A DNA stretch of 64,000 bases from Piromyces finnis finn (GCA_002104945.1 MCFH01000101.1:8373-72372); one strand, 5' to 3'. Shown: positions 13,467 through 62,808, counted from the first letter of the stretch. Notes: generated by a model from the sequence alone, not told the origin. Translations and numbers: made by a program.

Positions 13467-14034
13467 TGCTAAGTTTTTGGGTTTGGTTATGCGGCGGTCA
13501 GGTCAGAATGTTATTAATTATATAGCAAAATGTTTTTTAAGAAATTTAATTTAATAATAATATAGCACTTAAAACTCCCCAATAAGAAAAATTAATATTT
13601 GTTTTTAAAGTAACTTTTTATAAATTTTTATTTATTTTTTAATAATAATAATATATATTTAATAACTATATACTTAAGATTATATCTATAATCTTTACAA
13701 AGAATAAGAATCGAATTCAATTCATTCTGTATTATATCCTTTGTTAAGATTATTAAATTGATAAGAATAGCAATAAAGTATTACATGTGATATATTAATA
13801 ATATAATAATAAATTATAAAAGTGTTGTTTGTTTGTTTGTTTGTTTTTGGTTAAGGGTTATAGTGTATTAACATTAAATTTTTGAAGTCATAACCCTTTA
13901 CTGAATCAAATATCAAAAGGTGACTTTTAAAAGTATTTTAAAATAATTATTGAAATTATTTAATTATAACTTTTATGTTTAATTCATTATAGACATTATC
14001 TGAATTTGTTATAAATCCGGTTAATATCTTCACA
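13467..14034. mobile_element. Family-F solo LTR, TSD TTATA
   Basis: TGCTAAG...GGTTATGCGG...ATATCTTCACA; TTATA on both sides; homologous to 38680 and 41301. Confidence 0.88.
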
Positions 14035-14093
14035 TTATATTGTAGATAATAATTATTAATAAATATATAGTAATAATTATTATATAATATAAA

Positions 14094-14593
14094 TGTAAAA
14101 GATTTTATTATATATTAGTTAATAAGTTATTATTAAAAGTTAAATTAAGTTAGGTATTACCCCTCTATAAGAGTTGAGTTAATAACTAAATAAAGTTTTA
14201 TAAAAAATAATAAAAGAAAGAAAATAAATATTATACACTAAAATAAATATTAGTAAATAAATATTAATAGTAAATAATTTTTATTTAAATAATTTTTATA
14301 GTTATATCTTTTATTTATTAATTATAATTATTATACATTAATTATTATTATAGTTATTAATTTACTTTAATACTAACGCCAAAGTATTTTAGCGTTTGTT
14401 TACATTGAACTATTTAACTATACTAGTTTATTTTCTTTACCGCTTGATTGGGTAAAGCTAATAAACTTCCTATTTAAATAATAAACATTAATATATGGTT
14501 ATGCATAATTTTTAACCAATAAATGCTAACCAGAATATATGGTTTCAATTGAAATATTTGTGGGCAATTTTATGGCCACAAATATTTCTTATA
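14094..14593 (-). mobile_element. Family-D solo LTR, TSD ATAAA, 13 bp upstream of tRNA-Val
   Basis: Homologous to LTR 62317-62808; ATAAA at 14089-14093 and 14594-14598. Confidence 0.9.
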
Positions 14594-14606
14594 ATAAACA
14601 GTCAAT

Positions 14607-14679
14607 ATCCAAATAGTGTAGTGGTTATCACGTTTCCTTTACACGGAAAAGGTCCCCGGTTCGAACCCGGGTTTGGGTA
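14607..14679 (+). tRNA. tRNA-Val(TAC)
   Basis: ATCCAAA/TTTGGGT acceptor, TTTCC-TT-TAC-AC-GGAAA anticodon arm, TTCGAAC T loop. Confidence 0.95.
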
Positions 14680-15781
14680 ATGATAAATATTATTTTAATG
14701 AAATATATTTTGATATGAATTTTAAAAATTGCATAAGGATAATATTTAAAGCTGACATACATCCCAAGCTGAATTTTTTTTTTTTTTCTTTATACTTTTA
14801 TTTAATAATTTTAATTTAAAATATTTCTAAATTTATTTATTTATTTATATACTATTTAAATAAATAAGTATACTTATTAGAATTTAAATTTTATCATAAC
14901 TACAACAACAACTATTATTATTATGATTATGATTATTATTATTATTATTATTATGATTATTATTATTATTATTATTATTATTATGATTATGATTATTATT
15001 ATTATGATTATTATTATATGATTATTATTATTATTATTAATATATATTAATATATATAAAATATATAAAATTCTTGATAAATGTTTAAATAATATTTTAA
15101 TATTTTTTTTTCAATTAGTATAAATTGAATTTTGATTTTTAATGATTTTATATATAGATTATTAATATTTAATATTTCATAATTTATTACTAAACATAAC
15201 AACTGGAATAATACTATAAAAATACTCTATATATTTTAAATTTTTCAAATATTTGCTTACAAATTAATAAATAATTATTATAATCTATAAATTTTCACTA
15301 ATTAAAAATTTTATATTTTATTTACATAATAGCTTTAGATTTGATTTTGATTAACTTTATGAACTTTTATTATCTTTATACTTATATCATCTTAATTGTA
15401 TTTTATTATAAAAGCATAGCTAATATAATATATCTTTTTAATGATTACAAGATATGTTTCATAGCATATAATAAAGTTTTTAAAATGCTAATTTTATTAA
15501 AGTTTGAATACATGTTTAAAACTTTTTTATTACCAAAAAGATTTGCTTGAAAATATTATATATTTAACATATAACTTTAAAAAGACTTTATAAGATTGAA
15601 TATTCTTAAAAATAATAAAAAAATATTTATAATTTGTAAATAATATAATGATACTTTTAAAAAATCCTTTTATTCTTTTAGTAGAATTAATATAATATAA
15701 ATTTTTAGTATTTAATATTAGATTTTTAGTAATTACAAAAGTTATTTAAAGAAATATCTCAAATTTTAAATTTCATCTTAT

Positions 15782-16060
15782 AAAAATAAAATAAAATAAA
15801 ATAAAATAAAATAAAATAAAATAAAATAAAATAAAATAAAATAAAATAAAATAAAATAAAATAAAATAAAATAAAATAAAATAAAATAAAATAAAATAAA
15901 ATAAAATAAAATAAAATAAAATAAAATAAAATAAAATAAAATAAAATAAAATAAAATAAAATAAAATAAAATAAAATAAAATAAAATAAAATAAAATAAA
16001 ATAAAATAAAATAAAATAAAATAAAATAAAATAAAATAAAATAAAATAAAATAAAATAAA
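15782..16060. repeat. (TAAAA)n microsatellite
   Basis: Perfect pentamer run. Confidence 0.96.
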
Positions 16061-16652: not shown

Positions 16653-16724
16653 TAGCAGCGGTATGTTTCGATCATACGACCTGTGGGTTATGAGCCCACC
16701 ACGCTTCCACTGCGCTACGCTGCT
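16653..16724 (-). tRNA. Initiator tRNA-Met(CAT)
   Basis: A1:U72 pair (AGCAGCG/CGCTGCT), GGG/CCC anticodon stem, ATCGAAA T loop. Confidence 0.96.
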
Positions 16725-16736: not shown

Positions 16737-17231
16737 TGTAAAAGGTTTTTTATATTATTAGTTAATAGGTTACTAATTAGTTAATTAAGTTAGTTATTAC
16801 CTCTCTATACGAGTTAATAACTAAATAAAGTTTTATAAAAAATAATAAAAGAAAGAAAATAAATATTATAACACTAAAATAAATATAAACACTTATATAA
16901 ATATTTTATGAAATAACTTTTACTTAAATAATTATATTTTAATTATATCTTTTATTTATTAATTATAATTATCTACATTAATTATTATTATAGCTATTAA
17001 TTTACTTTAATACTAACGCTAAAGTATTTAACGTTAGTTTTGACTATACTATTTAACTATATGAGTTTATTTTCTTTACCACTTGATTGGGTAAAGCAAA
17101 TAAACTTCCTATTTAATTAATAACCATTAATATATGGTTATGCATATATTTGGCCAATAAATGGTGACCAGAATATATGGTTTCAATTGAAATATTTGTG
17201 GGCAAACTTATGGCCACAAATATTTCTTACA
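16737..17231 (-). mobile_element. Family-D solo LTR, TSD GCTTT, 12 bp upstream of tRNA-iMet
   Basis: TGTAAAAGG...TTCTTACA; GCTTT at 16732-16736 and 17232-17236. Confidence 0.93.
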
Positions 17232-17241: not shown

Positions 17242-18041
17242 TGTAAGAAATAATAATTATTTGATACATAATTAATATTTCTTAGTTAAAATCATTAATT
17301 ATTAATCATTAATTAATGTTAATAATATTAGTTTATTTAAATAATTATTCTCATTTAAATTTATTTTAATTATTTATTTTCACTTAATTTTAATATCTTA
17401 AATTACATTTAGCCATTTAATTATACTATTCATTAATATTTTATTTAATATTTTTATTAATTATATTTATGCATTTAACTAATTAATTTAATTAATTACT
17501 TTTATTTAACTTTATATTTTTATCAAATATATTTAATTATTTATTTAATTAATTACTTTAAAATAATTATTCATTGTTTAGGAATCGATATTTTAAGGTT
17601 TTTTCCAATTTCTAAAATAATTGGTTTTACTTAAAATATACGATGATCAATATGTATAGAATGTTGATCGAACTTTGTTTAGGTTTTTCTTCTAATCTTT
17701 TCCTAAACAAAAAATTATTTTGTTAAGATTAGATAAAATTTTAATTTAAACTTTAAATTTATTAAATAATATAAATAAAGACTCTTGATTCCCTTCTAAG
17801 AAATCAAGAGTTATTATTATAAGAAACAAATTATAATAATAAAAGCGTTTTTAATTTTATTTTACTTAACTTAGTTATAATAAAACATATTAACTTATTA
17901 AAGTGTAAAATTATTTCTACTCTTATAATAAACTCGAACCTAAAGATAAGTATTAATATTTATTTTCTTTTTATTCTCAATTTATCAATAAATTGTAGTT
18001 AATAATTCTATTATATAATAATTTATAATGGAATTATTACA
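17242..18041 (+). mobile_element. Family-E solo LTR, TSD GTCAA
   Basis: TGTAAGAAAT...TTATTACA; GTCAA at 17237-17241 and 18042-18046; aligns with 61368-62306. Confidence 0.9.
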
Positions 18042-18095: not shown

Positions 18096-18450
18096 TGTCA
18101 AGAATAGAAGACGATTAAAAAATAAATTAAATATTCAAATAAATAATTTAAAAATCAAAGTTATATTTCAAAAATTATAAAACACTTTTAAAAATAATTA
18201 AAAGATCACTTTGAAAAAATTTAATATTGAAAAGGGTTAAGGATCACAAAAATTTAATTTTCAATAAATTAACCTTTGAGAAAAAAATGCATTATACGAA
18301 ACTAGTGATAACTTCTGAATCTCGCGTCCTATTTTCATTTTCTAGAGACTTCAAATCAACTTTATTAGAAAGTACTAGTTGGGATCTATATTCTCACAAA
18401 TTTTCAGCTAATTTAGACCACTAGTTCTTGAGATATAGCTATTTAAAGAT
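18096..18450 (-). repeat. Family-K LTR (partial; right boundary unclear)
   Basis: TGTCAAGAATAGAA terminus; colinear with 24321 for about 350 bp. Confidence 0.72.
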
Positions 18451-19074
18451 TTATGTAAAATTTAATTTATTGATAAGATAAAGTTTTTTGATGATAAAAT
18501 AAAATTTTAAAATTAAATAATTTTTAACTAATAAATATTTGAGATAATAAAATTTTTTTTATAAACTAAGCCTCAAAATTAGAAATAAATAAGTTAAATT
18601 TATGTTTGAAATATAATCAACCACAAAGCAAATAAATCAAAACTTTATTTTAAGTTTAGAAAATTCTTTATTAAATAAATTGAATTTAAATAGTTTAATA
18701 CAAATAATTTCTTTTAATAAATGTATAAATGTAAACAATGTAAAATTATAATATTAAAACATGTATATTAGAATTAATTCAATTTATTTAAAAAAGTATA
18801 AATAAAGAAAATTTCTCAACTATTGAAACGATAGTTGGAAAATAGTAGTTGTTGATAATTAATTAATTAGTATTAATAATATTAGATTATTAATAAAGTT
18901 ATAATAAAACATTTTTTTTATTTTATTTAAAAAACCTGGTTACCTAGCGAAGGCTTTGGTCAAATAACCTTCGTGGTAAAGTAATCAGCAGTTGTCATAA
19001 ATTAGAGGAATAAAGTTATTTTATAAATAAAAAATTATTAAAAATTAAATTGGAAGTTTTTCTGTTGTTGTCTT

Positions 19075-19417
<343 letters not shown>

Positions 19418-19531: not shown

Positions 19532-20242
19532 CGCCATGAATAATAGTGGATTCATGATTATTTATTTAAATAATATAACGTTTTATTTGTTTAATTAATT
19601 AGGAATATTTTATTATAAAACAGTATTAAATAATATTTAAGAGATATTCTTATTTTATAATTATTAAAATTTTATATTTATTAATGCTTGAATTAATATC
19701 CCTTTGTCCATTTGATTATGAAGGAAATTAAAATTAAATTATAAAATAATCATTCCTTCTGCAAATGACTTATAATATGATTTTAAAATTATTAAATATA
19801 ACTCGAGTTTAATAGTCATATATAATTATATATAATTAATATATATTTAATTTATAGAATAGTTAATTAATATAAACAATTAATCATGTATTAAATATTA
19901 AATGTATTCCTTTAATATTAAAGATAGTATAAATACTCAAGAAAATTCCTATCATTAGGAATTTCGAGAGTTCATTAATCTAAATATTTAACCTAATAAT
20001 AATAATAATAATTAATAAATAAAAATTTTTCTTTAAATAAAAGTTTTTCTTTAAATAAAATTTTTCTTTAATAAATTTTATTAATAAATAAAGTTAATTA
20101 ATAAATAAAGTTAATTAATAAATTAATAATAAATTAATATTTATTTAAAATTTTATTTATCCATTCATTTCATTTATTTAATTAATTAACAATTTAGGGT
20201 AAAATAGTACGTTCCGACCCAACCGAAGTGAAAAACCTGTCA
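19532..20242 (+). mobile_element. Family-C solo LTR, TSD TTTTA
   Basis: CGCCATGAA (eroded TGTCATGAA)...CCTGTCA; TTTTA on both sides. Confidence 0.82.
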
Positions 20243-20247
20243 TTTTA

Positions 20248-21224
<977 letters not shown>

Positions 21225-25489: not shown

Positions 25490-25744
25490 TACCACCCCAA
25501 GCCCACTTCACATTAATTCATGTTACGGATTTCACTTCAGTTAGGTCGGAATATACATATTTACCCTAAGTTTATTAATTTAATAAATAAATGAATAAAT
25601 AAATATTTTAAATAAATAACATTTTATTAATTAACTTTATTTATTAATAAATTTTTATTTAAAGAAAAATTTTTATTTATTAAATATTATTATAATTAGA
25701 GTAAATATTTATATTCCGACCTAACTGAAGTGAAATCCGTAACA

Positions 25745-25754
25745 ATGAACTCTC
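25745..25754 (+). promoter_or_regulatory. Self-priming PBS (family C)
   Basis: ATGAACTCTC directly after ...GTAACA is the exact reverse complement of GAGAGTTCAT in the LTR (26606-26615). Confidence 0.75.
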
Positions 25755-26180
25755 CACTCTACTACAAGACTTTGGGACTTCAAACTACTAGTTAGATCTT
25801 AAGGTTTTGTGGACTTCAAGTTGCCTTGGAATGTACAAATACATTTATTAAAGAAATAAACGCCACCTACGCCACATATGTTAACATATATTTTGGAAAA
25901 TTTTTTGAGAAATGAATTTGGTGGAATTTGAAATGGAATTATGAGATTTTTGAAATTTGAATGTTGGAGAAAGTTATTAATCTATCTTTGAATTAAGGAC
26001 TACTAAAATAAGTAATACTATTCTATCCTCTACTAAATGTAGAACTCCACATCCACATTGTGGATATAATTTTAAATTATACAAATTAAACTTAATGGTT
26101 GTCTCATGAAGATTTTATATATTTCATTATTAAATTAATTTATAAAAATTGCCTAGAATTCAATTTTTGTAGACGGGCAA

Positions 26181-26829
26181 TGTCATGAATATTAGTGGAT
26201 TCATGATTATTTATTTAATTAGTGTTCTATTCGTTTAATTAATTAGAAATATTTTATTATAAAACATAATTAAATAATATTTTAAGAGATATTAATTAAT
26301 TATAATTGTTAAGATTTTATATTTATTAAAATTAAAATTTGAATTAATATCTCTTTATTCATTTGATTAAGAAGGAAATTAAAACTAAATTATAAAATAA
26401 TCATTCCTTCTACAAATGATTGATAACATGACTTTTATAATTATTAAATTTAACACGAGTGAAAAGTCATATATAATTAATATATAATTAATTTATAGAA
26501 TAGTTAATTAATATAAATAATTAGTCATGTATTAAATTTAAAATGTATTCCTTAATATTAGAGATAGTATAAATACTCGAGAAAATTCCTATCATTAGGG
26601 ATTTCGAGAGTTCATTACATTTAATATTTACTCTAATTATAATAATATTTAATAAATAAAAATTTTTCTTTAAATAAAATTTTTTCTTTAAATAAAAATT
26701 TATTAATAAATAAAGTTAATTAATAAAATGTTATTTATTTAAAATATTTATTTATTCATTTATTTATTAAATTAATAAACTTAGGGTAAATATGTGTATT
26801 CCGACCTAACTGAAGTGAAATCGGTAACA
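26181..26829 (+). repeat. Family-C 3' LTR, 66 bp upstream of tRNA-Glu
   Basis: TGTCATGAAT...TCGGTAACA; homologous to 19532, 12770 and 48585. Confidence 0.88.
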
Positions 26830-26895: not shown

Positions 26896-26967
26896 TCCGC
26901 ATTGGTCCAGTGGCTAGGATTCCACGCTTTCACCGTGGCGGCCGGGGTTCGATTCCCCGATGCGGAA
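26896..26967 (+). tRNA. tRNA-Glu(TTC)
   Basis: TCCGCAT/ATGCGGA acceptor, CCACG-CT-TTC-AC-CGTGG anticodon arm. Confidence 0.96.
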
Positions 26968-26977
26968 ATCTTTAAAA

Positions 26978-27051
26978 GCTCGCGTAGCCTAATTGGATAG
27001 GGCGTCAGACTTCTAATCTGAAGATTGCGGGTTCGAGTCCCGCCGTGAGTG
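26978..27051 (+). tRNA. tRNA-Arg(TCT)
   Basis: GCTCGCG/CGTGAGT acceptor, TCAGA-CT-TCT-AA-TCTGA; 10 bp after tRNA-Glu. Confidence 0.96.
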
Positions 27052-35311: not shown

Positions 35312-35317
35312 CTCATA

Positions 35318-39746: not shown

Positions 39747-39820
39747 GCTCGCGTAGCCTAATTGGATAGGGCGTCAGACTTCTAATCTGAAGATTGCGGG
39801 TTCGAGTCCCGCCGTGAGTG
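39747..39820 (+). tRNA. tRNA-Arg(TCT)
   Basis: Identical to 26978-27051. Confidence 0.96.
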
Positions 39821-40888: not shown

Positions 40889-40922
<34 letters not shown>

Positions 40923-40929
40923 TTAAGCA

Positions 40930-41297
40930 TTGATATTTCATGAATCAGCAGAAATATCAAATCCATTTTAACATATGTTGTTGTTCACGAGTGTGACCCT
41001 ATCTAATAATCATAATTTTATGCAAAAATATTTTCATCCAAAAATTCACATTTGTTGTTGAGCTATGATTGTTTCTCTTTTGCTATTTATAATCTTAAAG
41101 GTTAAAAGTGTTTGCATTAATTTTTTATAAAAGGTAAAGGTCATGCTAATGCTGCTTTAATCTTTAACAAGTTTAATATTTCTTAACATTGTTATATAAT
41201 TTTAAAATTTGATAATAATTAATTTTTCTATATTTTAAAAGTAATTTTGCAATTTCAAGATCACTTGAAATTGCAGATTTCACTAGTATCCGTGACA
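40930..41297. repeat. Family-J LTR-like repeat
   Basis: Ends ACTAGTATCCGTGACA as at 30697; left boundary approximate. Confidence 0.55.
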
Positions 41298-41300: not shown

Positions 41301-41768
41301 TGTTAAATCTTAGAGTTTGGTTATGCGGCCAAGTCAGAATGTTATTAATTACATAGTAAAAATGTTTTGTAAGAAATTAAATTTAATTATAATATAACCC
41401 TTAAAACTTCCAAATAAGAAAAGTCAATATTTGGTTTTAAAATAACTTTATTATAAAATTTTATTTATTTAATAATAATAATATAAAATGATAATATATT
41501 TAGTAACTATATAATTAATATTATAACTATAATCTTTACAAAGAATTAAAATCGAATTCAATTCATTCTATTTTTCCTCTGTTAAGATAGAGATAAGGTA
41601 TTACATGTAATATATTAATAATAGAATACTTACACTGAATCAAAATTTAAAAGGTGACTTTTAAAGGTGTCTTAAAGTAATTATTGAAATTATTTAATTA
41701 TAATTATTATGTTTAATTAATTATAGATATTATCTGAATTTATTTTAAATCCAGTTAATATCTTCACA
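41301..41768. mobile_element. Family-F solo LTR (internally deleted)
   Basis: TGTTAAATC...GGTTATGCGGCC...ATATCTTCACA; CACAT on the left and overlapping the right end. Confidence 0.85.
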
Positions 41769-41771: not shown

Positions 41772-42420
41772 TGTCAAGAATCTAAGTGGATTTAAGTTTA
41801 TAATTAAGTCTACTAGGTTAGGATAGGCTTAATTATATAGTAAAGTAAGTGTTAAGATAAGGAATAATAAATATAGTTTTTAAAGAATTATTTTATTCAG
41901 CTTTTATTAATATATAAATATTAATTATTAATTTTTAAATATTGAATTTACTATATAAAAAAAGAGTATTAATAATCTCACAAAGAACTTCTTAAAATCG
42001 TTCTTTGTTCAACTTATTTATACTTTCATTTTTAATATAATATTGATATTAATAAAGTATAATAATAATAATATTTTTAAGTTATACATGTATAATAATA
42101 TAAATATAAATATTAATAAAATATAATAATATAATAATATAAAAATATAATTTTCTTTAAATATTGATATTAATAAGTTGTTAAAAATAATATTAATAAT
42201 TGTTTAAATGAATCATATTTTACTAATTGGTTTGTTTAATATTAATTAATTGTTACACTATTTATCTCCGGATAATAAATAGCTTCCCAATTAATATTTA
42301 TATTAAATCAACTATTATTAGTAAAATATTATTAAATTAATATTTTAATTAATTTAATTAATAATTTCAAAATTATGAAATTTCATGAAATGTCGAATTT
42401 CATGAATTGAGATTTTGACA
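41772..42420. mobile_element. Family-I solo LTR, TSD CACAT, 68 bp upstream of tRNA-Met
   Basis: TGTCAAGA...GATTTTGACA; CACAT at 41767-41771 and 42421-42425. Confidence 0.9.
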
Positions 42421-42488: not shown

Positions 42489-42561
42489 GCGAAGTTGGCG
42501 CAGTCGGCAGCGCGTAAGTCTCATAATCTTAAGGTCGTGAGTTCGAACCTCACACTTCGCA
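42489..42561 (+). tRNA. tRNA-Met(CAT), elongator type
   Basis: Identical to 58-130. Confidence 0.96.
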
Positions 42562-46258: not shown

Positions 46259-46267
46259 GTCTTTGAA

Positions 46268-48450: not shown

Positions 48451-48522
48451 TGGAGAGTGAGTGATTCGAACACCCAACCTTCCGCTCTGGAGGCGGACGC
48501 GCTACCGTTGCGCCAACCCTCC
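48451..48522 (-). tRNA. tRNA-Trp(CCA)
   Basis: Identical to 29085-29156. Confidence 0.95.
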
Positions 48523-48584: not shown

Positions 48585-49210
48585 TGTCATGAATATTAGT
48601 GGATTCATGATAATTTATTTAAATAATGTTTTATACATTTAATTAATTAGGAGTAATAATTTTATAAAACATTATTAAACAATATTTTTAGAGATTTCTA
48701 TTAATTATAATTATTAAGATTTTATATTTATTAAAGTTTAAATAATATCTCTTTGTTCATTTGATGTGGAAGGAAATTTAAATAAATGAAATAGTTAGTC
48801 ATTCCTCCTCAAATGATTGAAATGGTTTAAGCAATTAAATAAAGGCAAGTCATAAGCTTAAAGTCATTATATAAATATTTAATATATTTTAATTTATAGA
48901 ATAGTTAATTATATTAAAATTGAAATCATGTATTTTATAATTAATGTAACTTATTAAATAGATTAATCATTTATTAATTGATTTAAAAATTATAAATACT
49001 CGAAATTGATTCAACAATTGAACTTTTCGAGAAATCATTAAGTTTGATAACTCTACTTAGTGAATTAATAAAATATTTGGTTAATAAGATGTATTAATAA
49101 ATTTATTAATAAATAAAAGTATTATAATAATACATAATTTATATTAAATTAATAAGTAGGGTTAGGGCATTCTGACCTAACTTACCTAAATTCATCTTAG
49201 ATCCTTAACA
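48585..49210 (+). mobile_element. Family-C-related solo LTR, TSD AATAA, 62 bp upstream of tRNA-Trp
   Basis: TGTCATGAATATTAGTGGATTCATGA...ATCCTTAACA; AATAA on both sides (low complexity). Confidence 0.8.
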
Positions 49211-49217
49211 AATAATA

Positions 49218-50236: not shown

Positions 50237-50440
50237 AAAAAACTTACGACCCATTTGACTCTTTGTGTTTGGTTGTTTATTATAAATCTTTATAATAAAC
50301 TCGATAAGTTTATTTTTACTTTCTATTTTCTATTCTAATTTGTTCAATACTTCTTATTTCCGCATAATAATACTACAATATTATTCGTTAATATTATTGT
50401 AGATAGTAATTTCTGTAAACAATAATAAGAAATTACTACA
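50237..50440 (+). repeat. 5' LTR remnant of family-E element
   Basis: Essentially identical to 62103-62306; the upstream part of the LTR is absent. Confidence 0.92.
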
Positions 50441-50452
50441 ATAATAACTCTT
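50441..50452 (+). promoter_or_regulatory. Self-priming PBS (family E)
   Basis: ATAATAACTCTT is the reverse complement of AAGAGTTATTAT in the LTR (61999-62010). Confidence 0.8.
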
Positions 50453-50769
50453 CTCGTATTTTGTTTAATTGGACAACAATAATATTAATACATTGATACA
50501 TTAAACATATTACAAAACAATATATATATATATAAAAAAAAAAAATTTTACCAATCAAAAAAAAAAAAAAAATTTTTTACCAATCAAAAAAAAAAAAAAA
50601 ATTTTTATAAAAAAAAAAAAAAAAAAAAAAAAAAGATAATTAAACAGTTTAACAAAGGAAAAAAGTCATTTATAATTTTTTTTTTTACTATTAAATATTA
50701 TTGACATACATAATTAAGACTAATTTTTTTTTTTCTTTTTATATATATTGTATATATAAACTAAATAAT

Positions 50770-53532
50770 ATGGATCATTGTAAGTTGGATAGTATCAACG
50801 GTACCACAGCAAGTTCTTACAAAGATGAGAGTCCAAATAATCAAACTGCTTCAAAATTAATAACAGCTATCACTGACTTTATTCTGCTTTTTTCTCACCA
50901 AACGGAATTTTGCTCAAAGAAAACGAAACAAAAAACCCTATTAACATCTTAGAAGCAATAATACAAGGGGAAACTTTCTTCAAAGAACACCCAGAATCCT
51001 TCAAAAATGATGAATCAAAAAATTCATTTATAATAAATAAGCTCAGCGGTAATGCTAGAAAGTGGGGTCTTTCACTTTTAGCTGATGGCATTCTAAAAAA
51101 ACTCAATTTCCAACAATTCAAAGATCTTTTACTAGAAAATTTTGACGTGGGAACTGAAAGAAAGCAAAAGTATATGATTATGGACAAGCTGTGGAAACTC
51201 AAGCAATCTCATCTTGGTGGTGCTGTGGAATATACTATCGAATTTCGCAGATTGGCTGGACGTCTAGGATGGCCCGACGAAGTTCTGACTGATATTATAG
51301 GAAAGGGCTTAGTAAACAATGTAAGAGAGGAGTTCGATAAGTTAGAGAAACCTAAGACTCTCTTTGAAGCTACGAATATCATCATCAGCCTGGACAAGAA
51401 GTGCCTTCTGGAAAGCCAGTTACGAGGAAAGGATAGAGATAATAATAAGAACAAGAAATCTTTCAGAAGGCGAAGACACGAATTAGCAAAAAATGAGAAC
51501 CAAGGGAAACACTTTCTCCGAAAAGATAGATTTAAAAACAATATTCTTTCAGCTAACTATACTCCAGATGGAAAACCATCGATTACCACAACATTTTATC
51601 TATCAGTTAATGGAAGAAATGTAAAAGTAAATCTCCTAATAGACTCTGGATCAGCTAGAAGTTTTATCTGCAAAAGCTTTGCCAATGCACACAAGCTACC
51701 AACTACAGGCCTTGCTTCCCCCATCAATATACAACTCCCAAATGGAAAGGGGATGACCATTAAACAAACATGTAAACCACTCAAACTAAAGATTATGGAC
51801 CATTCTGAAGTTTTCGAATTCTGCATAGCTAATCTGTCTCTTCAAGGAATAAATGGAATCCTTGGAAGGGATTGGTTAGCATTACATAACCCTTATATAA
51901 ATTACCACCTCAATAAGATCTTCTTTATTGGAAAGTTTTGTGGCTCTCACTGTCCTTCCTCTACAAGGAATAAATTCCTAAATCAAAACATAACTGCTTC
52001 AATGATAGATAAACCATTACAAGACGGGAAGAAATCGATGGATTCTATCATTCCAGGTATGATATCAGAGGATGAACTTTTCGATACAGAAGTGTGCGCA
52101 GTAATGGTCCAAGAAGAGGAAGAAAACCGCTCGGAGAATAATATGAATAACATGAATATAATCAGTAAATTTTATTCTAAATTTCATCTTGTATTTGAAA
52201 AGAAGGAGGCGGAAAAATTACCTCCTCACCGCGAATACGACATATCAATAGATCTCATTCCAGGTGGGCAACTATATTTCGGACCCATTTACTCTTTGAC
52301 TGTTAAAGAATTAACCACTTTAAAAGAATACATTCAAGAAAATTTGGAGAAGAAATTCATAAGAAAATCCAAGTCTCCTGCTGGAGCCCCGGTACTTTTT
52401 GTGAAGAAACATGATGGATCTCTCCGACTTTGTGTGGATTACCGTCGACTGAATGCTATTACAATCCGTAATAGTTACCCTATTCCTAGAATCAACGACT
52501 TAATAGAAGCCTTCAAGAATGCAAGAATATTTACAAGACTTGACCTTAGATCAGCATACAACTTAGTACGAGTCAAGGAAGGTCATGAATACCTCACTGC
52601 ATTCCGGACACCATTAGGTCATTTCGAATACTTGGTTATGCCTTTTGGTCTCCGAAATGCACCATCCGTATTCCAACGCTTTGTTCAAGATGTACTAAAT
52701 GACACCATAGGTCTGTTCGCCCAAGTATACCTAGATGATATTATCATCTACTCACGCTCCTTGGAAGAACATATAAATCATGTCCGACTGGTTCTTGATT
52801 TACTTCTAAAAAATGGGTTATATGTTAAATTAGAGAAGTGTGACTTTCATGTCACGGAAACTACGTTCTTAGGCTTTACAATTTCCACTAATGGACTTGC
52901 TATGGACAAAAATAAAGTTAAATCTATTATAGAGTGGCCCACGCCAAAAAATGTTAAGGAACTACAAAGTTTCCTAGGACTCTGCAACTTTTATAGGAAG
53001 TTCATCAAGGACTTCGCCTCTAACATGGAACCTCTCCGGAAACTCCTAAAGAAAGACAACGACTTCATATGGGATAAAGCCGCCGAAGATGCTTTCAACA
53101 AATTAAAAGAAGCTTTTAGAGTCGGTGAAATATTGATCTTTCCTGACCCAGAGAAGGTATTCACTGTGGAAACAGACGCAAGTGACTTCGCTGTTGGCTG
53201 TGTCTTATCCCAGGTCAGTGACATGGATAACCAATTACATCCAGTTGCTTTTCACTCCAGATCTTTAAATAAAGCAGAAGTTAATTATACAATATATGAT
53301 AAAGAACTTCTCGCAATAATAACTGCTTTTGACATCTGGAGACACCACCTAGAAGGATCCAAGTTTCCTGTTCAAGTATATAACGGATCACAAAAATCTG
53401 TTATACCTTAAAAAGCCCAACACCTAAATCAAAGACAAATCCGATGGAGTTTTCTATCAAAATTTGACTTTAGGATTGCTTACAGACCAGGCGCTAAAAG
53501 TGGAAAACCAGATGCTTTGTCTAGACGCCCGG
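50770..53532 (+). pseudogene. gag-pol: gag-PR-RT-RNase H of family-E element (few frameshifts)
   Basis: LLIDSGS, LRLCVDYRRLN, YLDDIII, VETDASDFAVG; gag and pol in one frame over 833 aa; ends DALSRRP at the nested insertion. Confidence 0.95.
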
Positions 53533-53970
53533 TGTAAAGAAATGTGTCTTTAACAATAAAACAAATTATAATATTTACTAAATAATTAGTAATATTAACA
53601 CTTTAAAATATTCTGTAAATTATTAATTTATAAAATATCATTAAAAACACATAGAATTTAACTTAATAAGTTAGTGTTTAATAATATAATTATTTATTAA
53701 TAAAATCTCGATTCTTTAAAATATTTGGGAAAATTCACTCGTATTTATACTAAAAATTTTTTAAATTAATTTATATAAATTTTTTCAACTTAAAATTCTT
53801 AACCAATCAATAATCTTCATATAAAATAAAATTTAAAAATAAAATAAAATAAAATAAAATTATAATTTTTTTAAAATAGTATCTATGAGGTCTCGAACTA
53901 GTGTCATTCAGACTCAAAGTCTTAGCTACTAACCACTAAGACAATTTAGTTATTTCTAGTATTCATTACA
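53533..53970 (-). repeat. 3' LTR of nested chromovirus
   Basis: Differs from 59618-60055 by a handful of mostly homopolymer indels; preceded on the sense strand by GGAGGAGGACCA. Confidence 0.96.
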
Positions 53971-54279
53971 TGGTCCTCCTCCAGGATTCGGATACCAGAC
54001 GAATCTAGAATTTTAATATTTAAATATATGTTTTTCTTTTTTAATAAACTAAACTAAGGAGTGAATTTTCTTAATTATAAAAATACATTTAATATAATAA
54101 AATACATTTTTTTTTTTAATATTACTAAAGTTAAAAATAAAATATTGATAAATTTGATATTAATAAATTGTTTAATAATAAAATTGATATTGATAATGAT
54201 ATTAATAAGTTTTGATAATAATAATAATTGTGATTTTAATTATTAATAATAAATATAATTTGAATTTTTTAACTATTTT

Positions 54280-57200
54280 TTATTTCTTTCTATTAAATTT
54301 TTTAAAGTAGGCCCCTTGCAATTTTAGATTTTCTTCAGGCTCCCACGAAGCTTCATTGATTGAATACCCTTTCCATTTAATCAGGTATTGTATTTTTCCG
54401 TAATGTCTTCTTTTATCCAGAATTTCTTCAACTTCGTATTCTTCTTCATTGTCAACGGTAATAGGTGGCGGTGGTGGTTGAGATCTTCCAAATTTATCTT
54501 CGACATATTTTCTCGAGATTGGATACATGAATAATGGATGAATCTTAATTAGATTTTGGGAGACTTAATTTAAATGTAACATTTGATATTTTTTCCAAGA
54601 TTTTGTATGGGCCGAGTTTTCTTGGCTTAAATTTTTTATTTCCTTTGTGGATAATTAAAGAACTATCCAGCCAAACTTTGTCACCAACTTTAAAATTCGG
54701 AGCTTCTTTTCTACGTTTGTCAGCATGCTTCTTCTGGGTTTCCATGGCAGATTTTAAAATTTTCTTTTAAGGTATTAATTAAAGTTTTAAAATCTCTTGT
54801 AAACTCTTCTGCTCTTGGGACTTTAGATAAGTCTGGAATAACTGGTGAATATTTTGGATGAAAGCCGTAATTCAAAAAGAATGGAGAAAATTTGGATGAT
54901 TCTTGAACCACGTTGTTATAACTAAATTCTGCAAGACTAAGAAAACTTTTCCAATTTGAACCTTTATAATTTGAGAAACATCTTAAATATTGTTCTATAA
55001 GGAGTTCACCCTCTCCGTCTGACCGTTTGATTGATGATGAAATGGAGTAGACAACTTAAGTTCAATGCCAAGGGAGGAACAGATGGATTGGAAGAATTTA
55101 GAGGTAAATTGAGAACCTCTATCCGAGACAATAGATTCAGGTAGGCCATGAAGACGGAAAATATTATCAATAAAGGCTGTGGCTGTTTCGGCGGCGGAAG
55201 GAATACTTTTGAAACGGAATGAGATGGAACCATTTTTGTAAGACGACAATCAACAAACAAGAATGCAAGTGAAACAGAAGATGAAGGCAAATCATGTAAT
55301 GAAATCCATTGAAATGGATGACCAAGGACGTTCAGCAATATCAAGAGGATTCAGAAGACCATAAGGTTTATGACGAAAGGTTTTTGAACGACAACAAACT
55401 TCACAAGAACGAACGTAGTCTTTAACATCAGAAGAAATAGAAGGCCACCAGAAGTCTCTAGCAATAAGAGAAGATGTTTTCTTTATTCCGAAATGACCCA
55501 GCTGAAGGAGAGTCGTGACAGAGTTTAAAGAATTGAAAGACGACCAATTTGGAGGAACATAGATTCTGTCAGTAAAAAAGGAGAAAACTATTGCTTAAGG
55601 AAAATTTGTCAATTTGAGGGTGAGGTATTGGAGGTTTCCTACAATCAAAGATATTCACAGATTTTATTGTAAAAGTCATCATTTATATATTCGGAAAGAA
55701 AAAGAATCACTAATGGACGAAACAGAAGTCACAATGGCACAAAAGTTTTCAGGGCGAAGAACAATTAAAAGGAACATCAGAAGAGGAATTCGAATTGATA
55801 GCATAATCAGGACGACGAGATAGGCATCAGGCTTACCGTTAGAAGAACCAGAACGATAAATAATAACAAAGTTAAATTCAGAGAGAAACAAAGCCCAGCG
55901 AACAAGACGTTGAGACATTTTTTCAGGTTTCTTTTGATAGAGTAAATTTCGATGATCCGAGTAAATCTTAAAAGTAGAAGAAGAGCCTTTAAGTAGATGA
56001 CGCCATGTTTCAAGAGCAGCAACGATAGCTAAGAGCTCTTTATCATATATTGGATAATTACGTTCAGGACCAGTAAGAGAGCGAGAAAAGAAAGCAACTG
56101 GATGGGTCATATTATCAATTGGAGAGACTTGCGAGAGAATAGCACCAATGGCAAAGTTACTTGAATCAGTTTCGACTATGAATGGAAGTTCACGATTAGG
56201 AAATATAAGAACAGGAGCAGAAACAAATAAGGACTTGAGTGAATCGAAAGCATCTTGAGCTTCTTTAGACCATACAAATTTAACATTTTTCTTCAAAAGT
56301 TTATGCAAAGGATGAGCGATCTTTGCAAAATTTGGAATAAATCGACGGTAGTAGTTCGCAAGACCAAGAAAAGATTGAACCTCTTTAACATTAGATGGAG
56401 TAGGCCAGTTTAAAATAGAAGAAACTTTATTTGGGTCCATGTGAATCCATCAGTAGAAATCCTATGACCAAGGAAATCAATAAAAGAAACAAAGAATCGC
56501 ATTTTTCCAAATTTAGCAATAGAGCCCAGCATCCCTCAGGAGTTTTCAAAACAGTTTTGACATGAGATATATGAGATTTATAATCAGAGGAAAAAATAAT
56601 AATATCATCTATGTAAGAGAAAGCGAATTTACCAAGAACGTCTTCAGACATCATTAATGAAATGTTGAAAAACAGCAGGTGCATTTTTCAACCCAAAAGG
56701 CATCAACCAGTATTCAAAATGACCTAACTTGCAAGTAAAAGCGGTTTTATATTCATCACCACTTTTAATCCTGACCAAGTTATAGGCAGAACGAAGATCC
56801 AATTTTGGAGAAAATCTTCCCTTTTCCAAGATGTTCAAGCATATCTTGTATAAGAGGAAGGGGATAAGAATCACGAATAGTTATGGAGTTTAATTGGCGA
56901 TAGTCAACACACATACGAAGTTGACCGTTTTCTTAGGTACAAACAGAATAGGAGCTCCCGCAGGCGATTTTGATTTTCTAATAAATCCTTTCTTGAGATT
57001 TCTTTTATATATTCTTCTAAAGCAATTGATTCGGTTTTCTGTTAGAGGATAAATCGGTCCATAAAAACAGTTTTGAATTTTCTTTGAGTTTTATTTCACA
57101 ATCGTATGGACGGTGTGGAGGAAGTTTTTCAGCATTAGATTCATTGAAGACATCAGCAAAGTCAGAGAGAACATCCGGAAGTATAATAGAAGAATTGGGT

Positions 57201-58735
57201 TCTGATTTAGAGTTTTGAATCGGATTTGAGAATAGAATTGGATTGAATATTAGAATCAGAAAAAGAAGTCAAAACAGAAGTTGGTTCTTGATTTGAGAGA
57301 GACGAAGTAGAAAAGTTAACAGAAGACTTCTTAGAAACAGAATTGTTAATATTTTTTGAAGAACCCGAACAGAGAATAGTACAAGTACGATTAGTTTCGT
57401 TTTGAGATTGGATGTTTTGTTTATCGACAAATATAGGGTAAGTGAATGAATCATGCGGAGGTTCGTAGGAAGGATCTTCCATTGCAGGAAAAGCAGATCT
57501 TTCTTCAGGAAATTCAGGGACATTATTGGAGAGTGTTATACAACGATTATAACAGTAATCGGATACAAATGAAATTTTGTTCTTTGTGAAATCGATAGAA
57601 GGATTGTGTTCTTTAAGCCAATCTATTCCAAGAATACAAGGATAATAAGGTAGATTCAGTTACATAGAATTGTGTTCGACAGAGATGATCTTTGTAGCGA
57701 AGATTCAAAGGAGATGTAATTCCAAAAAGAGATTGTCGACCACCGATACCAACGATATTTGGTAGGTTACCGTCATCATGATAAGGAATGTTATTATCGT
57801 TACAGTAATCTACATCAATTAAATTAAGTTTGGATCCTGAGTCAATAAGAATATCCGTATTTAGTTCATAAGAAAGTTTAAATTTAGTTGTCATTTTATT
57901 ATGAGTTTTGTTTTCTTCTTTAGGAGCGGATATAAGTGGTGGGAATAGATATTAGTGAAGGATTTTCACGATCTTTATTCTTTCTTTTTGGACAATTATT
58001 AAGCTTATGACTTGAAGCACCACAATACACACAAAGATTTTCTTTCTTTCTTCTTTCCTTTTCTTCGTTTGAGATAGGGCCATGGTTATTCCTGTTTGTA
58101 ATGGACTTTGTTATTTTTGAAGAGTGATGAAAAGATCTTTTCTTTCGGTTTTGGTCATTGTTTGAACCAGAAGGGAAAAAGGTATGATGTGTAGATAATC
58201 TTGAATCGATTCTTGAAGCAATAGTCTGTAATGAAAGAAGATCCCTAGGACCCGGAAACATTTCCAAAATACGAACGGCAACTTGTTGATTAAGGCCAGC
58301 TATAAATGCATCCATTTTGGCTTGTTCATTCCAGTTTGATTCATCAGCATAGCGGTTAAATTCCAAGATATAGCCTCTATTCCTCCTAATCGGCGTTGTT
58401 TTAAGGTTCTAAGCATTTGATTTGCAACATAGGTAGCATCGTTATATCCATAAAAAGCCTTAAATCTGTCAACAAAAGCTTGGTAGTTATTAAGACACGG
58501 ATCATGGTTGTTTATAGAGTAGCAGCCCAGTTCATAGCGTCTCCATAAAGTCTTGATATTATGTAGAGAATTTTGGTTGCGTCGTCTTGATACCGTTCAG
58601 GATATAGCATAAACACTAGCTCCACCTTAGCTAAGAAACCCTTCAGATACCTGCGATCCCCTGCAAAACCATCCTTAAGAGTTGCGTTTTCGAAATATTA
58701 TTATTATCCATGTGGTTGTTTTCGTTCTCTTCCAT
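54280..58735 (-). pseudogene. gag-pol: gag-pol of nested chromovirus (frameshifted)
   Basis: CVYCGASSHKLNNC knuckle, [30 protein letters not shown], chromodomain [25 protein letters not shown]...SWEP at about 54325-54447. Confidence 0.95.
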
Positions 58736-59607
58736 AGTACTTATGATGTTTTCTTTAATAAGCTTTAATAAATTTGTAAAAATAATAGAATAAAGTATTT
58801 AATTATATTTATTAATTGAGTAAATCTTTTTATTAAATAATAATATAAACCAGATTATATAGTGTTAAACCATCAAATATATAACCTGTTTTATTCTTTA
58901 TAATAAGTCCTTCGTAGCTCTTCACGATAACACGTATAAAGTCGATTGTTAATATTAATTAATTAATAAAAGAAAGGAACGGTGTAAAAATTTTTTTTAG
59001 TGTCTAACTTATTGTTAGCAATAAAAATTATTACAGGTTTTCTTTCCCTATATCAACCTTATCGAACGTAGAAGTATTATGTATAAGAGTTTAACATCTC
59101 ACGCTAAAGGAGTTATAAAGAATATTATTTTATATTATTACAATTTTAATAAATTGTCTTAACAATTAATAATTATAATTAGAAATTGTTTTATTAGAAA
59201 ACTTAATTTTAAAATGTATTAATTAAGAAATATTATTTTATTAAAGTAAGGCATTTCCGGCTATTTTCCGGTCTATAATCAAACAGCAAAAGATAGTATA
59301 CAACTATAAATCTCACGCCAGCTTGCTTATTACAGCGTCTTGTACGTGGTGTACCTCGGATTCTCCTACTTCCTTATTCAAAGTAGAATAGCTCAGAGCC
59401 TGCCAACCCAATTATTGTACAGGTTAAACTCGATCCCGTTAATCTTTTACTTTTTATAGTTTGAATTATATACCGCTTCTAAAGCGTACTAATTCTACTA
59501 CTTTAAGTAAAAATATTTCTTTAAAGAAAAGCTTCAACAATAAAACTTAAAAGTTTTATCTATAACAATTTCTTAAACACTAAGGTATTAAGCTTTTATA
59601 TTATAAG

Positions 59608-59617
59608 GAGATTTTAT
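59608..59617 (-). promoter_or_regulatory. Self-priming PBS of nested chromovirus
   Basis: Sense ATAAAATCTC abuts the 5' LTR and is complementary to sense GAGATTTTAT inside the LTR (59787-59796). Confidence 0.75.
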
Positions 59618-60055
59618 TGTAAAGAAATGTGTCTTTAACAATAAAACAAATTATAATATTTACTAAATAACTTAGTAATATTAACACTTTAAAATATTCT
59701 GTAAATTATTAATTTATAAAAATATCATTAAAAACACATAGAATTTAACTTAATAAGTTAGTGTTTAATAATATAATTATTTATTAATAAAATCTCGATT
59801 CTTTAAAATATTTGGGAAATTCACTCGTATTTATACTAAAAATTTTTAAATTAATTTATAAAATTTTTTCAACTTAAAATTCTTAACCAATCAATAATCT
59901 TCATATAAAATAAAATTTAAAAATAAAATAAATAAAAATAAATTATAATTTTTTTTTAAAATAGTATCTATGAGGTCTCGAACTAGTGTCATTCAGACTC
60001 AAAGTCTTAGCTACTAACCACTAAGACAATTTAGTTATTTCTAGTATTCATTACA
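59618..60055 (-). repeat. 5' LTR of nested chromovirus
   Basis: Paired with 53533-53970. Confidence 0.96.
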
Positions 60056-60060
60056 CCCGG

Positions 60061-61372
60061 ACTATAAACTCCATTTGCCATCTGAACCCGAAGCCATTTT
60101 AAAAGATAATGTTTTCTGCTGTTCTATGACAGATAATTTGGATAATATCATTAAAGCGCAGAAGTCTGATAAATTTTGTAGGGAAACTTTGGCTAAAGTC
60201 AAATCAAACTCTGACGGTTTTAAAAGTTCTTTGTTCAGCCTCGTCGATGGTGTTCTACATTTCCAAAAACGCATCATTGTTCCATCCTCACTCAAGGTTA
60301 GACTTCTTAAGTCCTTCCATGATGCTCCAACAAGTGGCCATCAGGGTGTAGATAGAACCTTTGAAAAACTTAAAAGATTTTACTGGTGGCCGAATATGAA
60401 AAAGGACATAACTAATTATGTGCTTTCGTGCGACATCTGTAGTAAAAGTAAAATACGGAGGCATAAACCTTATGGCAAACTATTGCCACTTCCTACTCTA
60501 CAAAACCCTGGGAAGTAATCGGTATTGACTTCATAGTCTCTTTGCCTCGTCTCAAGATTGCACTTGTATCATGATTGCCTCAGACCATTTAACAAAAATG
60601 GTTCATTTGGTTCCTTGTGCTGACGTCCCCTCTGCCGATCTTACTGCCAAGCTCTTGTTATTCCAAGTTTTTAAATTTCATGGATTCCTAAAATAATAGT
60701 ATCCGACCATGGCTCACAATTTTCCTCCCAATTTTGGACCTCTTTATGCTCGGCGTTACATGCTAAACCTAGTCTAGCTACTGCCCATCACCAGCAATCA
60801 AATGGGCAAGTTGAAAGAGCAAATGCTGTTATCGAACAATATCTTAGGTGTTATTGTTCCTCTTCTCAAAATGAATGGTGTTATTATCTTCCATTATGCG
60901 AGATTGCATACAACAATTCTATTCACAGGTCAATTAAGCAAACACCCTTTCATGCCAATTACGGTTTTCACCCTAACTTCTTTATTGACTCTCCTCCTAT
61001 ACTTCTTAAGGACAACGCCTCAGTTCTAACAAGGAATTGGGCTGCACATTTTGATGCACTTCGTCTCCATCTCATTAAAGCTAAGGAAGATTTCAAGAAA
61101 TTTGGCGATTCTAAAAAATCCTCAGGTCCTTCACTTCAAGTTAATGATTTAGTTATGCTGAAAAGATACTATTTTTCTAATGAACCTTCCAAAAAACTTT
61201 CATCACAATACTTAGGACCTTTTCGTATTTTAGAAAAAGGGAGAGAATGAATTACAGGCTGGAACTTCCTGATAGTCTACATCTCCATCCAGTATTCCAT
61301 ATATCACAGCTAGAGCCATATACAAAAAGAAGGGAAGATTTGAAAGAACAAGAGTTAAAAGGAGCAATGTAA
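60061..61372 (+). pseudogene. pol: Integrase of family-E element (no chromodomain)
   Basis: HDAPTSGHQG/CDIC, DHGSQF, ERAN, GPF...HPVFHISQLEPY, then stop at the LTR boundary. Confidence 0.92.
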
Positions 61373-62306
61373 GAAATATTAATTATTCATAATTGAATAA
61401 TTATTATTTCTTATTATTTAATACAAATTTATTTAAATTATTATTTTCTATACATTCAACTATTACTAATAATTTATTAAATTATTTAATATTTCATTCA
61501 TTTAGTTAATACTTATGATTTACTTAAAATATTAATTTTATATACACTTATATAAAATATAAAATTTATTTACTTGCTATATTATATATTTAATTAACTT
61601 TATAAATTTATTTAATTATTAATTTTTATGTACATTTAATTAATATAAATAATTTATTTACTTATTATTTATCTTATACATTTAATTTTGACTAACTATA
61701 TTCATTACACTTATTGTTTTAAATTATGTATTAATTATATTTTATGTATTGTATTAAGCACGGATAAAATAGGAATCGGAATTTTAAGGTTTTCCCGATT
61801 TCGCTTTAAAGAAGCATTCGGTTTTACTTAAAATTACACGAAGATCAATATGACTAGAATATTGATCGAAAATCATGTTTAGGTTTTTCTTCTAGTCTTT
61901 TCCTAAACATTTTATTTGTTAAGATTAGAACCCGTTTATTTAACCTTATTTTTTAATAAAATTATAAATAAAACACTCTTGAAATTCCTTAGAAATTCAA
62001 GAGTTATTATTATAAAGGAATACGTTATAATAAATAACATAAATACATTTTTCTTTTTAATTAAATAAAATATCCTTCTAATAAATCAGTAATTTAAAAA
62101 AAAAAAACTTACGACCCATTTGACTCTTTGTGTTTGGTTGTTTATTATAAATCTTTATAATAAACTCGATAAGTTTTATTTTTACTTTCTATTTTCTATT
62201 CTAATTTGTTCAATACTTCTTATTTCCGCATAATAATACTACAATATTATTCGTTAATATTATTGTAGATAGTAATTTCTGTAAACAATAATAAGAAATT
62301 ACTACA
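61368..62306 (+). repeat. 3' LTR of family-E element
   Basis: TGTAAGAAAT...ATTACTACA after the PPT. Confidence 0.93.
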
Positions 62307-62316
62307 CGAATCTATT

Positions 62317-62808
62317 TGTAAAAGGTTTTTATATATGTTAGTTAATAAGTTAATTATAACAAGTTAATTAAGTTAGTTATTACCTCTCTATACGAGTTAA
62401 TAACTAAATAAAGTTTTATAAAAATAATAAAAGAACTAAAATAAATATTATAACACAAAAATAAATATAACACAATAAATATTAATATGAAATATTATTT
62501 ACTTAAATAATTATTATAATTATTATCTTTTATTTATTAATTATAATTATCTACATTAATTATTATTATAGTTATTAATTTACTTTAATACTAACGCTAA
62601 GGTATTTAACATTAGTTTTGACTATACTATTTAACTATATGAGTTTATTTTCTTTACCACTTGATTGGGTAAAGCAAATAAACTTCCTATTTAAATAATA
62701 ACCATTAATATATGGTTATGCATATATTTGGCCAATAAATGATGACCAGAATATATGGTTTCAATTGAAATATTCGTGGGCAAACTTATGGCCACAATAT
62801 TTCTTACA
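62317..62808 (-). repeat. 3' LTR of family-D element
   Basis: Sense TGTAAGAAATATTGTGGCC...CCTTTTACA. Confidence 0.94.

Follow-up and report, generated by a model that had tools for sequence, protein, structure and literature searches.

In a stretch of 64,000 nucleotides (nt) from the genome of the anaerobic gut fungus Piromyces finnis (contig MCFH01000101.1; the whole stretch is called the window below), retrotransposons with long terminal repeats (LTRs) lie inserted at two fixed distances from tRNA genes, on the upstream side only, and successive elements have reused the same target bonds. The near site lies about 12-17 nt, and the far site about 62-69 nt, before the mature tRNA 5' end. The tRNA cluster in this window is likely to be a repeated landing pad for LTR elements, which would integrate in a position-specific manner at two upstream sites by means of an integrase complex tethered to the RNA polymerase III (Pol III) pre-initiation complex. 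Targeting of tRNA genes is a textbook way for retrotransposons to spare compact genomes, with several independent origins among yeasts and social amoebae. An earlier note on this DNA had proposed tRNA-directed insertion, upstream and in two discrete windows of distance, and within the stretch analysed here both parts of that proposal are borne out.

The window contains 12 tRNA genes, on which ARAGORN and Rfam are concordant, and offers nine tRNA loci at which insertions could be assessed. Repeats were found by masked megablast, LTR ends were set by comparing copies with one another, and the regions upstream of the tRNAs were read individually. The distance of an insertion was counted by script as the number of nucleotides between the terminal base of the LTR and position +1 of the tRNA; where insertions are nested, each younger insert was removed together with one copy of its duplication before counting. 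The start of tRNA-Val was taken as 14607 (Rfam 14607-14679), because a T then falls at position 8, which in our reading is the normal place of U8.

The near-site edges comprise D at 12 nt and E at 17 nt from the initiator tRNA-Met (iMet, position 16724) and D at 13 nt from tRNA-Val (14607), and no near-site edge was seen at Glu 26896, Arg 39747, Met 42489 or Trp 48522. The far-site edges comprise K at 66 nt from iMet, F at 67 and C at 69 nt from Val, C at 66 nt from Glu 26896, F at 66 and G at 67 nt from Arg 39747, I at 68 nt from Met 42489, and a C-like LTR at 62 nt from Trp 48522. All of these distances had been listed in the earlier note, and every one was reproduced exactly by a script working from the tRNA coordinates and the LTR ends. 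That list was correct as far as it went, but it missed two more far-site cases at Met 42489, namely F at 66 nt once I is removed and P at ~66 nt, and not every tRNA fits: Met 58, located at the window's edge and with another tRNA 9 nt before it, does not follow the pattern. Altogether, the six loci have ten far-site edges, all inside a stretch of 8 nt, and eight of these edges are at 66-68 nt; the sample is small. The target-site duplications themselves lie ~8-17 nt before the mature tRNA 5' end at the near site and ~62-69 nt before it at the far site, where most LTR edges are at 66-68 nt; the two sites are ~54 bp apart, and their midpoint is ~37 nt before the mature 5' end.

Nine LTR insertions have perfect 5-bp target-site duplications (5/5), namely ATAAA for D at Val, GCTTT for D at iMet, GTCAA for E, TTATA for F at Val, TTTGA for F at Arg, TTTTG for G, CACAT for I at Met, TTTTA for the second copy of C, and CCCGG for the chromovirus N. 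No common target motif was found among these duplications, which are merely AT-rich or, once, CACAT. From 12 to 50 kb, there is one repeat end point per ~233 nt, so that a window of 8 nt would be hit with p ~0.034; for six of the nine assessable loci to be hit in one such window, the probability is ~1e-7, a rough estimate that is uncorrected for the choice of the window. Furthermore, the 62-69 nt flanks between the far-site LTRs and the tRNAs show no sequence relation across loci and the tRNA species differ, and the insertions are therefore separate and independent events. This bears on the idea that the repeated distances arose by segmental duplication or gene conversion of LTR-plus-tRNA units, which we regard as highly improbable: segmental duplications do exist in the window (the Glu-Arg pair, the Trp loci, and a unit M that carries 45 nt of the upstream flank of Arg), but the six loci differ in their tRNA species, in their non-homologous flanks and in their duplications, and several different LTR families stand at the same distance.

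The same sites have been used more than once. At Met 42489, P (ending at 41297), F (41301-41768) and I (41772-42420) are stacked at one CACAT site, and at Arg 39747 G and F are stacked with duplications, TTTTG and TTTGA, that overlap by 4 nt; C and F at Val, and D and E at iMet, are likewise stacked on identical sites or on sites shifted by 1-2 nt. In addition, the order of D, 10 nt and E at iMet recurs at 62307-62316 as X, 10 nt and D (X ends at 62306 and the edge of D is at 62317), a spacing to be expected if a tRNA outside the window, on the far side of D, lay 12 nt from D and 17 nt from X. A single site, nucleotides 50-54 of the D-like LTR J, holds the second copies of both C and I, and if J once sat 12 nt from a tRNA, this site would have lain at 12+54 = 66 nt.

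The insertions are also confined to one side. The earlier note had named equal abundance on the 3' side as an outcome that would speak against targeting, and within the window 34 repeat end points lie within 300 nt upstream of tRNAs as against 1 within 300 nt on the 3' side. It could be supposed that there is no targeting at all, and that elements landing at random in gene-poor, repeat-rich DNA survived only where they spared the tRNA promoter. The window is indeed a repeat graveyard with many rearrangements, and related elements occur elsewhere in nests without tRNAs. Selection of this kind, however, predicts a lower bound on the distance rather than a peak 3 nt wide, and it does not account for the near-absence of repeat ends 3' of tRNAs, for near-site insertions inside the supposedly protected zone, or for younger elements that hit the duplications of older ones instead of the 500-1000 bp interiors of their LTRs; we therefore consider survival without targeting very unlikely.

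The coordinates of the tRNA genes concerned and of the elements inserted at them are collected in Table 1.

Table 1. Targeted tRNA genes, far-site LTRs, near-site elements and the nested chromovirus, with positions in the window; distances are to the mature tRNA 5' end
Feature	Position	Strand	Remarks
tRNA-Val(TAC)	14607..14679	+	ARAGORN, Rfam; target of D (13 nt), F (67), C (69)
Initiator tRNA-Met	16653..16724	-	ARAGORN, Rfam; target of D (12 nt), E (17), K (66)
tRNA-Glu(TTC) and tRNA-Arg(TCT), tandem pair	26896..27051	+	ARAGORN, Rfam; 10 nt spacer; C 66 nt upstream of Glu
tRNA-Arg(TCT)	39747..39820	+	ARAGORN, Rfam; target of F (66), G (67)
Elongator tRNA-Met	42489..42561	+	ARAGORN, Rfam; target of I (68), F (66), P (~66), one CACAT site
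tRNA-Trp(CCA)	48451..48522	-	ARAGORN, Rfam; C-like LTR 62 nt upstream
C LTR at Val, 5'-truncated	12769..13459	+	No duplication; 69 nt
F solo LTR at Val	13467..14034	+	Duplication TTATA; 67 nt
K LTR-like unit	18096..18996		TGTCAAGAAT end 66 nt from iMet after removal of D and E; far end approximate
C copy 2 and I copy 2	19532..21224		C 19532-20242 (duplication TTTTA), I 20248-21224; one site inside D-like LTR J
C element at Glu 26896	25521..26829	-	5' LTR 26181-26829 (66 nt from Glu); ~430 bp non-coding interior; first ~45 nt of 3' LTR on minus strand (25700-25745); inverted LTR piece (25521-25679)
G solo LTR (C-like termini)	37822..38673	+	Duplication TTTTG; 67 nt from Arg 39747
F solo LTR at Arg	38680..39680	+	Duplication TTTGA; 66 nt; later insert of ~426 bp (~39054-39480)
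P, LTR-like unit ending CGTGACA	40900..41297		3 nt before F at Met 42489; start approximate
F solo LTR at Met 42489	41301..41768	+	66 nt once I removed
I solo LTR at Met 42489	41772..42420		Duplication CACAT; 68 nt
C-like LTR	48585..49214	-	62 nt from Trp 48522
D solo LTR at Val	14094..14593	-	Duplication ATAAA at -13 to -9
D solo LTR at iMet	16737..17231	-	Duplication GCTTT at -12 to -8; tRNA-relative orientation opposite to D at Val
E solo LTR (X-like)	17242..18041	+	Duplication GTCAA; 17 nt from iMet once D removed
X element (E-like LTRs)	50237..62306	+	5' LTR remnant 50237-50440; gag-protease-reverse transcriptase-RNase H reading frame 50910-53411; integrase pieces 60045-61369; 3' LTR 61368-62306; interrupted by N
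N, complete chromovirus inside X pol gene	53533..60055	-	LTRs 97.7% alike; duplication CCCGG; canonical Chromo domain; not at a tRNA
D element cut by the window edge	62317..64000	-	3' LTR 62317-62808, polypurine tract adjoining, integrase 62833-63849; 10 nt from X end

The near site is used by two Ty3/gypsy lineages, D and E/X, whose LTRs have the start TGTAAGAAAT in common and show TG...CA ends and a short target-site duplication. In X, one open reading frame (ORF) encodes gag, RVP_2, RVT_1 and RT_RNaseH in this order, with the integrase pieces downstream and before the 3' LTR; this is the gag-protease-reverse transcriptase-RNase H-integrase order of Ty3/gypsy elements (Metaviridae), and D has its integrase beside the 3' LTR and polypurine tract. 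The distances, 12 and 13 nt for D and 17 nt for E, are within the ~12-19 nt of Ty3-type start-site insertion, which occurs in either orientation; insertion of D in both orientations relative to its tRNA, as the earlier note had it, is confirmed by the copies at Val and iMet, at 12-13 nt; E/X is found at 17 nt. Targeting of the Ty3 type further involves TFIIIB on an active tRNA promoter, and an integrase in which SH3 is followed by a vestigial chromodomain touching Brf1 and TBP.

The integrase of D consists of an rve domain, an SH3 domain (SH3_Tf2-1) and then a fold of the chromodomain type. Its best sequence match in PDB is the Ty3 Gag-Pol protein, entry 7q5b (E = 8.8e-15), which is also its best fold match. 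The last 78 residues are conserved in relatives and were modelled with a pLDDT of 87; the model of this C-terminal part aligns with chromodomains at a TM-score on the target of 0.78-0.81 and a root mean square deviation of 1.4-1.5 A, while a Pfam search of the same part gave no match even at E <= 10, and no Chromo. The X-family integrase, on the other hand, ends ~10-20 residues after SH3, as do its full-length relatives, and near-site targeting therefore cannot need the extra domain in both lineages. A canonical chromodomain is found neither in D nor in X; only N has one (E = 4.3e-15), and N is not at a tRNA. Of the 5' LTR of X, the last 204 of ~939 bp are kept, joined to a truncated copy of family H (50080-50440), and the left flank of X, where one copy of its duplication would lie, is deleted. 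The LTR remnants of X are 99.5% alike over 204 bp, as compared with 97.7% for the LTRs of the nested N; this is surprising in the older element, and gene conversion, or chance in so short a comparison, may account for it.

The far-site LTRs are, by their termini, a related set. The terminus TGTCAWGAAT is common to C, G, the C-like LTR, I and K, with 7 hits against 0.6 expected, and at the opposite end F and G have TGTTAA in common; the termini of the far-site clade are TGTTA...ATGACA. The earlier note had counted six tRNA loci and seven families: the six loci stand, but the families share termini, and from this comparison the evidence covers about two or three lineages overall. In our reading, the 3' LTR end faces the tRNA in 7/8 far-site cases with callable orientation, the sense strand being taken from the C unit at Glu 26896. 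This unit is a short non-autonomous one, with ~430 bp between its LTR pieces. A primer-binding site was looked for in it and rejected: the sequence after the 5' LTR (26140-26180, minus strand) does not begin with TGG, matches by eye no 3' end of the tRNAs in the window, and occurs only once in the window.

The TG...CA ends and 5-bp duplications of the far-site LTRs mean that an integrase does the work. How two sites could be set on one gene may be considered from the geometry of yeast, in which TFIIIB occupies -15 to -32 relative to the start site, its downstream side being where Ty3 docks (PMC8632968). With a leader of ~10 nt, the midpoint of the two sites here would roughly coincide with the position of TBP; in the earlier note's reading, the near window would correspond to the Pol III start, and the far window to the upstream edge of TFIIIB. 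Given two sites ~54 bp apart with their midpoint near the expected TBP, the far site would thus fit docking on the upstream face of TFIIIB. We envisage that the Pol III pre-initiation complex assembled at the tRNA gene would tether the incoming integrase complex; near-site elements would dock on the downstream face of TFIIIB, as Ty3 does, with strand transfer near the Pol III start, and far-site elements would dock on the upstream face, with strand transfer at a fixed distance beyond it. Elements arriving later would enter at the phosphodiester bonds used before and displace the older LTRs outwards, giving nested stacks. We put forward only tentatively, as one possible account, that the elements have found two docking solutions on one Pol III pre-initiation complex, a Ty3-like one downstream and a roughly mirror-image one upstream of TFIIIB, ~54 bp apart, with an accuracy of a few nucleotides and a strong orientation bias.

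The main rival to docking on TFIIIB is that the far site is set by chromatin, either through Ty1-like binding to a Pol III subunit or through a preference for the first positioned upstream nucleosome, on which 62-69 nt would be a favoured spot. Ty1 and related copia elements do target nucleosomal DNA upstream of Pol III genes (PMC5911963; PMC3545840), and the far-site elements have no visible coding region, so that a copia-type integrase is possible. The Ty1 window, however, extends over ~1 kb with a period of ~80 bp, as opposed to ten edges within 8 nt, eight of them at 66-68; successive insertions here reuse the same 5 bp, and no second peak was seen in this small sample. We consider a chromatin-set far site unlikely.

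A number of observations weigh against tethered integration at two TFIIIB faces. All of the evidence comes from the one window with its nine assessable loci, and the placement of TFIIIB and of the start site would be carried over from the geometry of yeast. No coding sequence of any far-site element (C, G, C-like, F, I, K or P) was found in the window, and the X-family integrase is without the extra C-terminal domain. At Glu 46187 there is no clear edge in either window of distance; the D-like LTR J lies before this gene, with a 3' end that is not placeable. At Trp 29156 an edge of family H lies ~24 nt away, with no duplication to confirm it (an earlier placement at 34 nt was rejected after comparison of copies), and several copies of the far-site clade are not near any present tRNA, namely K at 24321 and 32172 and, inside J, C with I. 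None of 28 loci (L001-L028) fetched from other assemblies for related elements contains a tRNA, an Rfam search of five of these 28 detected no RNA family, and no tRNA was found 12-13 nt from those outer ends of D-like LTRs that are visible in L001, L010 and L028. The tRNA-less outer ends hint mildly that not all of the wider lineage shares the habit, or else the tRNA lies at the unseen end.

Among these, contig L010 comes from the closest relative found, with a polyprotein 83% identical over the shared part. It repeats the near-site junction in the form of an E-like LTR end, 9 nt and a D-like LTR start; E-like and D-like LTR ends abut at 9 nt and at 6 nt in its positions 5128-5138 and 6860-6877, and no tRNA was found on this 9-kb contig. 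In L028 (5735-5810), a 10-bp perfect hairpin is located directly beyond the outer edge of the D-like 3' LTR and is followed by a GTTCGAAT motif resembling a B box, and neither ARAGORN nor Rfam called an RNA there. The closest proteins in a big protein collection are 67% identical for D, and for X 73% over the full length and 83% over part, and none of the collections searched gave an identical sequence. A 46-mer of tRNA-Arg and the D-like LTR terminus of L010 had no match in metagenome_contigs, nor did the D integrase and the X polyprotein in viral_contigs.

Several LTR and non-LTR elements are known to integrate near tRNA genes. In the table of a 2018 review (PMC5911963), the LTR elements Ty3, Tj1, Tyl3, Ylt1 and Tyl6 insert at the start site or up to ~10 bp before it, Beta/Tca8 6-30 bp and DGLT-A 13-33 bp upstream, Ty1, Ty2 and Ty4 in an upstream window of ~1 kb, and Skipper-2 downstream of the tRNA, while the non-LTR elements TRE5 and NLTR-B insert 40-54 bp and 39-64 bp upstream, respectively; no LTR element at ~60-70 bp is listed. 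Counted from the tRNA itself, near-site distances are ~15 bp for Ty3 and 13-18 bp for DGLT-A (PMC6101501). The feature described here is real, and at the near site the elements behave as Ty3 ordinarily does, in a host lineage that is new for it. Like Ty3 of S. cerevisiae, the near-site elements have LTRs and a 5-bp duplication and insert in either orientation shortly upstream of the mature tRNA (~15 bp in Ty3), which would place them a few nucleotides ahead of the Pol III start; moreover, the D integrase is nearest to that of Ty3 among solved structures, with an SH3-type domain followed by a chromodomain fold missed by profiles, and it is the vestigial chromodomain of Ty3 that sets its position on TFIIIB (PMC8632968). 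They differ from Ty3 in that the host belongs to another fungal phylum, the D integrase is only ~20% identical in the fold alignment, and the E/X site is 4-5 nt further out, with no extra C-terminal domain. DGLT-A, a Ty3/gypsy element of Dictyostelium discoideum, has 18/20 insertions 13-18 bp upstream in either orientation, the same window as D and E (PMC5911963; PMC6101501), but it reportedly docks via RNase H and N-terminal integrase parts on the TFIIIC subunit Tfc4, not on TFIIIB. Tj1 of Schizosaccharomyces japonicus, also Ty3/gypsy, inserts 1-10 bp before tRNA start sites in a genome where tRNA genes and LTRs are clustered in centromeres (PMC4600332; PMC5911963), and no far site has been reported for it.

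For the far site, the nearest likeness is to TRE5-A and to NLTR-B of Polysphondylium, which use a distant fixed site upstream (40-54 and 39-64 bp), in Dictyostelium alongside a near-site LTR element, and the ORF1 protein of TRE5 binds TFIIIB (PMC5911963). These, however, are L1-like non-LTR elements that move by target-primed reverse transcription, whereas the far-site elements here are LTRs at 62-69 nt and more sharply placed; they do not belong to the TRE5 type, and the likeness is in behaviour only. Ty1, Ty2 and Ty4 (Ty1/copia) resemble them as LTR elements upstream of Pol III genes beyond the TFIIIB region, but have a broad window of ~1 kb, a nucleosomal period of ~80 bp and an integrase contact with Pol III subunits such as AC40, and targeting of the Ty1 type, with that window and period, was not seen in our small sample. 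A far site at ~62-69 bp is, as far as the 2018 review table and our literature search go, new for an LTR element, as we found none reported. The earlier note knew of no description in anaerobic gut fungi, and the literature search agrees: no report of tRNA-targeted LTR insertion in Neocallimastigomycota was found.

Non-coding DNA has a GC content of 10-20% (10-50 kb), rising to ~30% where retroelement genes lie; all sizeable ORFs in the window with a Pfam match are parts of retroelements, and no host protein gene was found in it. For the X polyprotein, the nearest relative that bears a name is an Orpinomyces gene model (66% identity), closer matches being metagenome proteins; like the low GC content, this makes the anaerobic gut fungus presumed in the earlier note plausible. 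In the first 12 kb, a ~700 bp non-coding unit is present in three same-strand copies 75-90% alike (2760-3474, 7373-8077 and 11391-11866), which interrupt a degraded retroelement in its gag, reverse transcriptase-RNase H and integrase parts. Very long microsatellites (AAC, AAAAT, GTTTT with a poly-T core, and TAA), often inside or beside LTRs, occur at 230-400, 15780-16060, 19060-19420, 20550-20830, 34150-34420, 36560-36910 and 40350-40650, and inflate LTR lengths, as for I (977 bp vs 649 bp).

Some of the repeats are rearranged. A palindromic arrangement of C LTR pieces at 25517-25749, made up of the first 159 nt (98% identical to 26671-26829) and then the inverted first ~45 nt, adjoins the internally deleted C element. 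The ~426 bp insert in F at Arg 39747 (39054-39480) has no clear CA end or duplication, and shares a motif with the P units at 30290-30697 and 40900-41297. The segments 35313-36091 and 37042-37821 were considered as an LTR pair beside tRNA-Gly 35311 and rejected, as they are a segmental duplication that includes 45 nt of the flank of Arg 39747. This duplication is ~0.8 kb long (35313-36135 vs 37042-37821 plus 39682-39726); one copy comes within 1 nt of the tRNA-Gly 5' end and stops ~21 nt short of the position expected for the Arg gene, beside TGATACG, which resembles an H-type LTR start.

The tRNA genes themselves are partly arranged in tight tandem pairs with spacers of 9-10 nt (1-131, 26896-27051 and 46187-46341), Glu-Arg pairs being present twice in the window; at the window edge, the 3' end of a tRNA lies 9 nt before Met 58. 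This arrangement suggests dicistronic Pol III units, and the second gene of each pair has no space for a near or a far insertion site.

Taken for what it means, the finding adds an early-diverging and very AT-rich fungal lineage to the record of tRNA targeting, and with it a far site, at ~66 nt, that is served by an integrase; the far sites given in the 2018 review table are those of non-LTR elements. If the two docking solutions should prove true, integrase targeting would gain a new 'ruler' open to measurement. Were the pattern to hold across the genome, it would offer a natural comparison of two integrase 'rulers' against one protein-DNA complex, and an LTR edge with a fixed spacer would become a practical annotation marker for clusters of tRNAs and repeats. 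It would also help to explain how such clusters grow in poorly assembled genomes.

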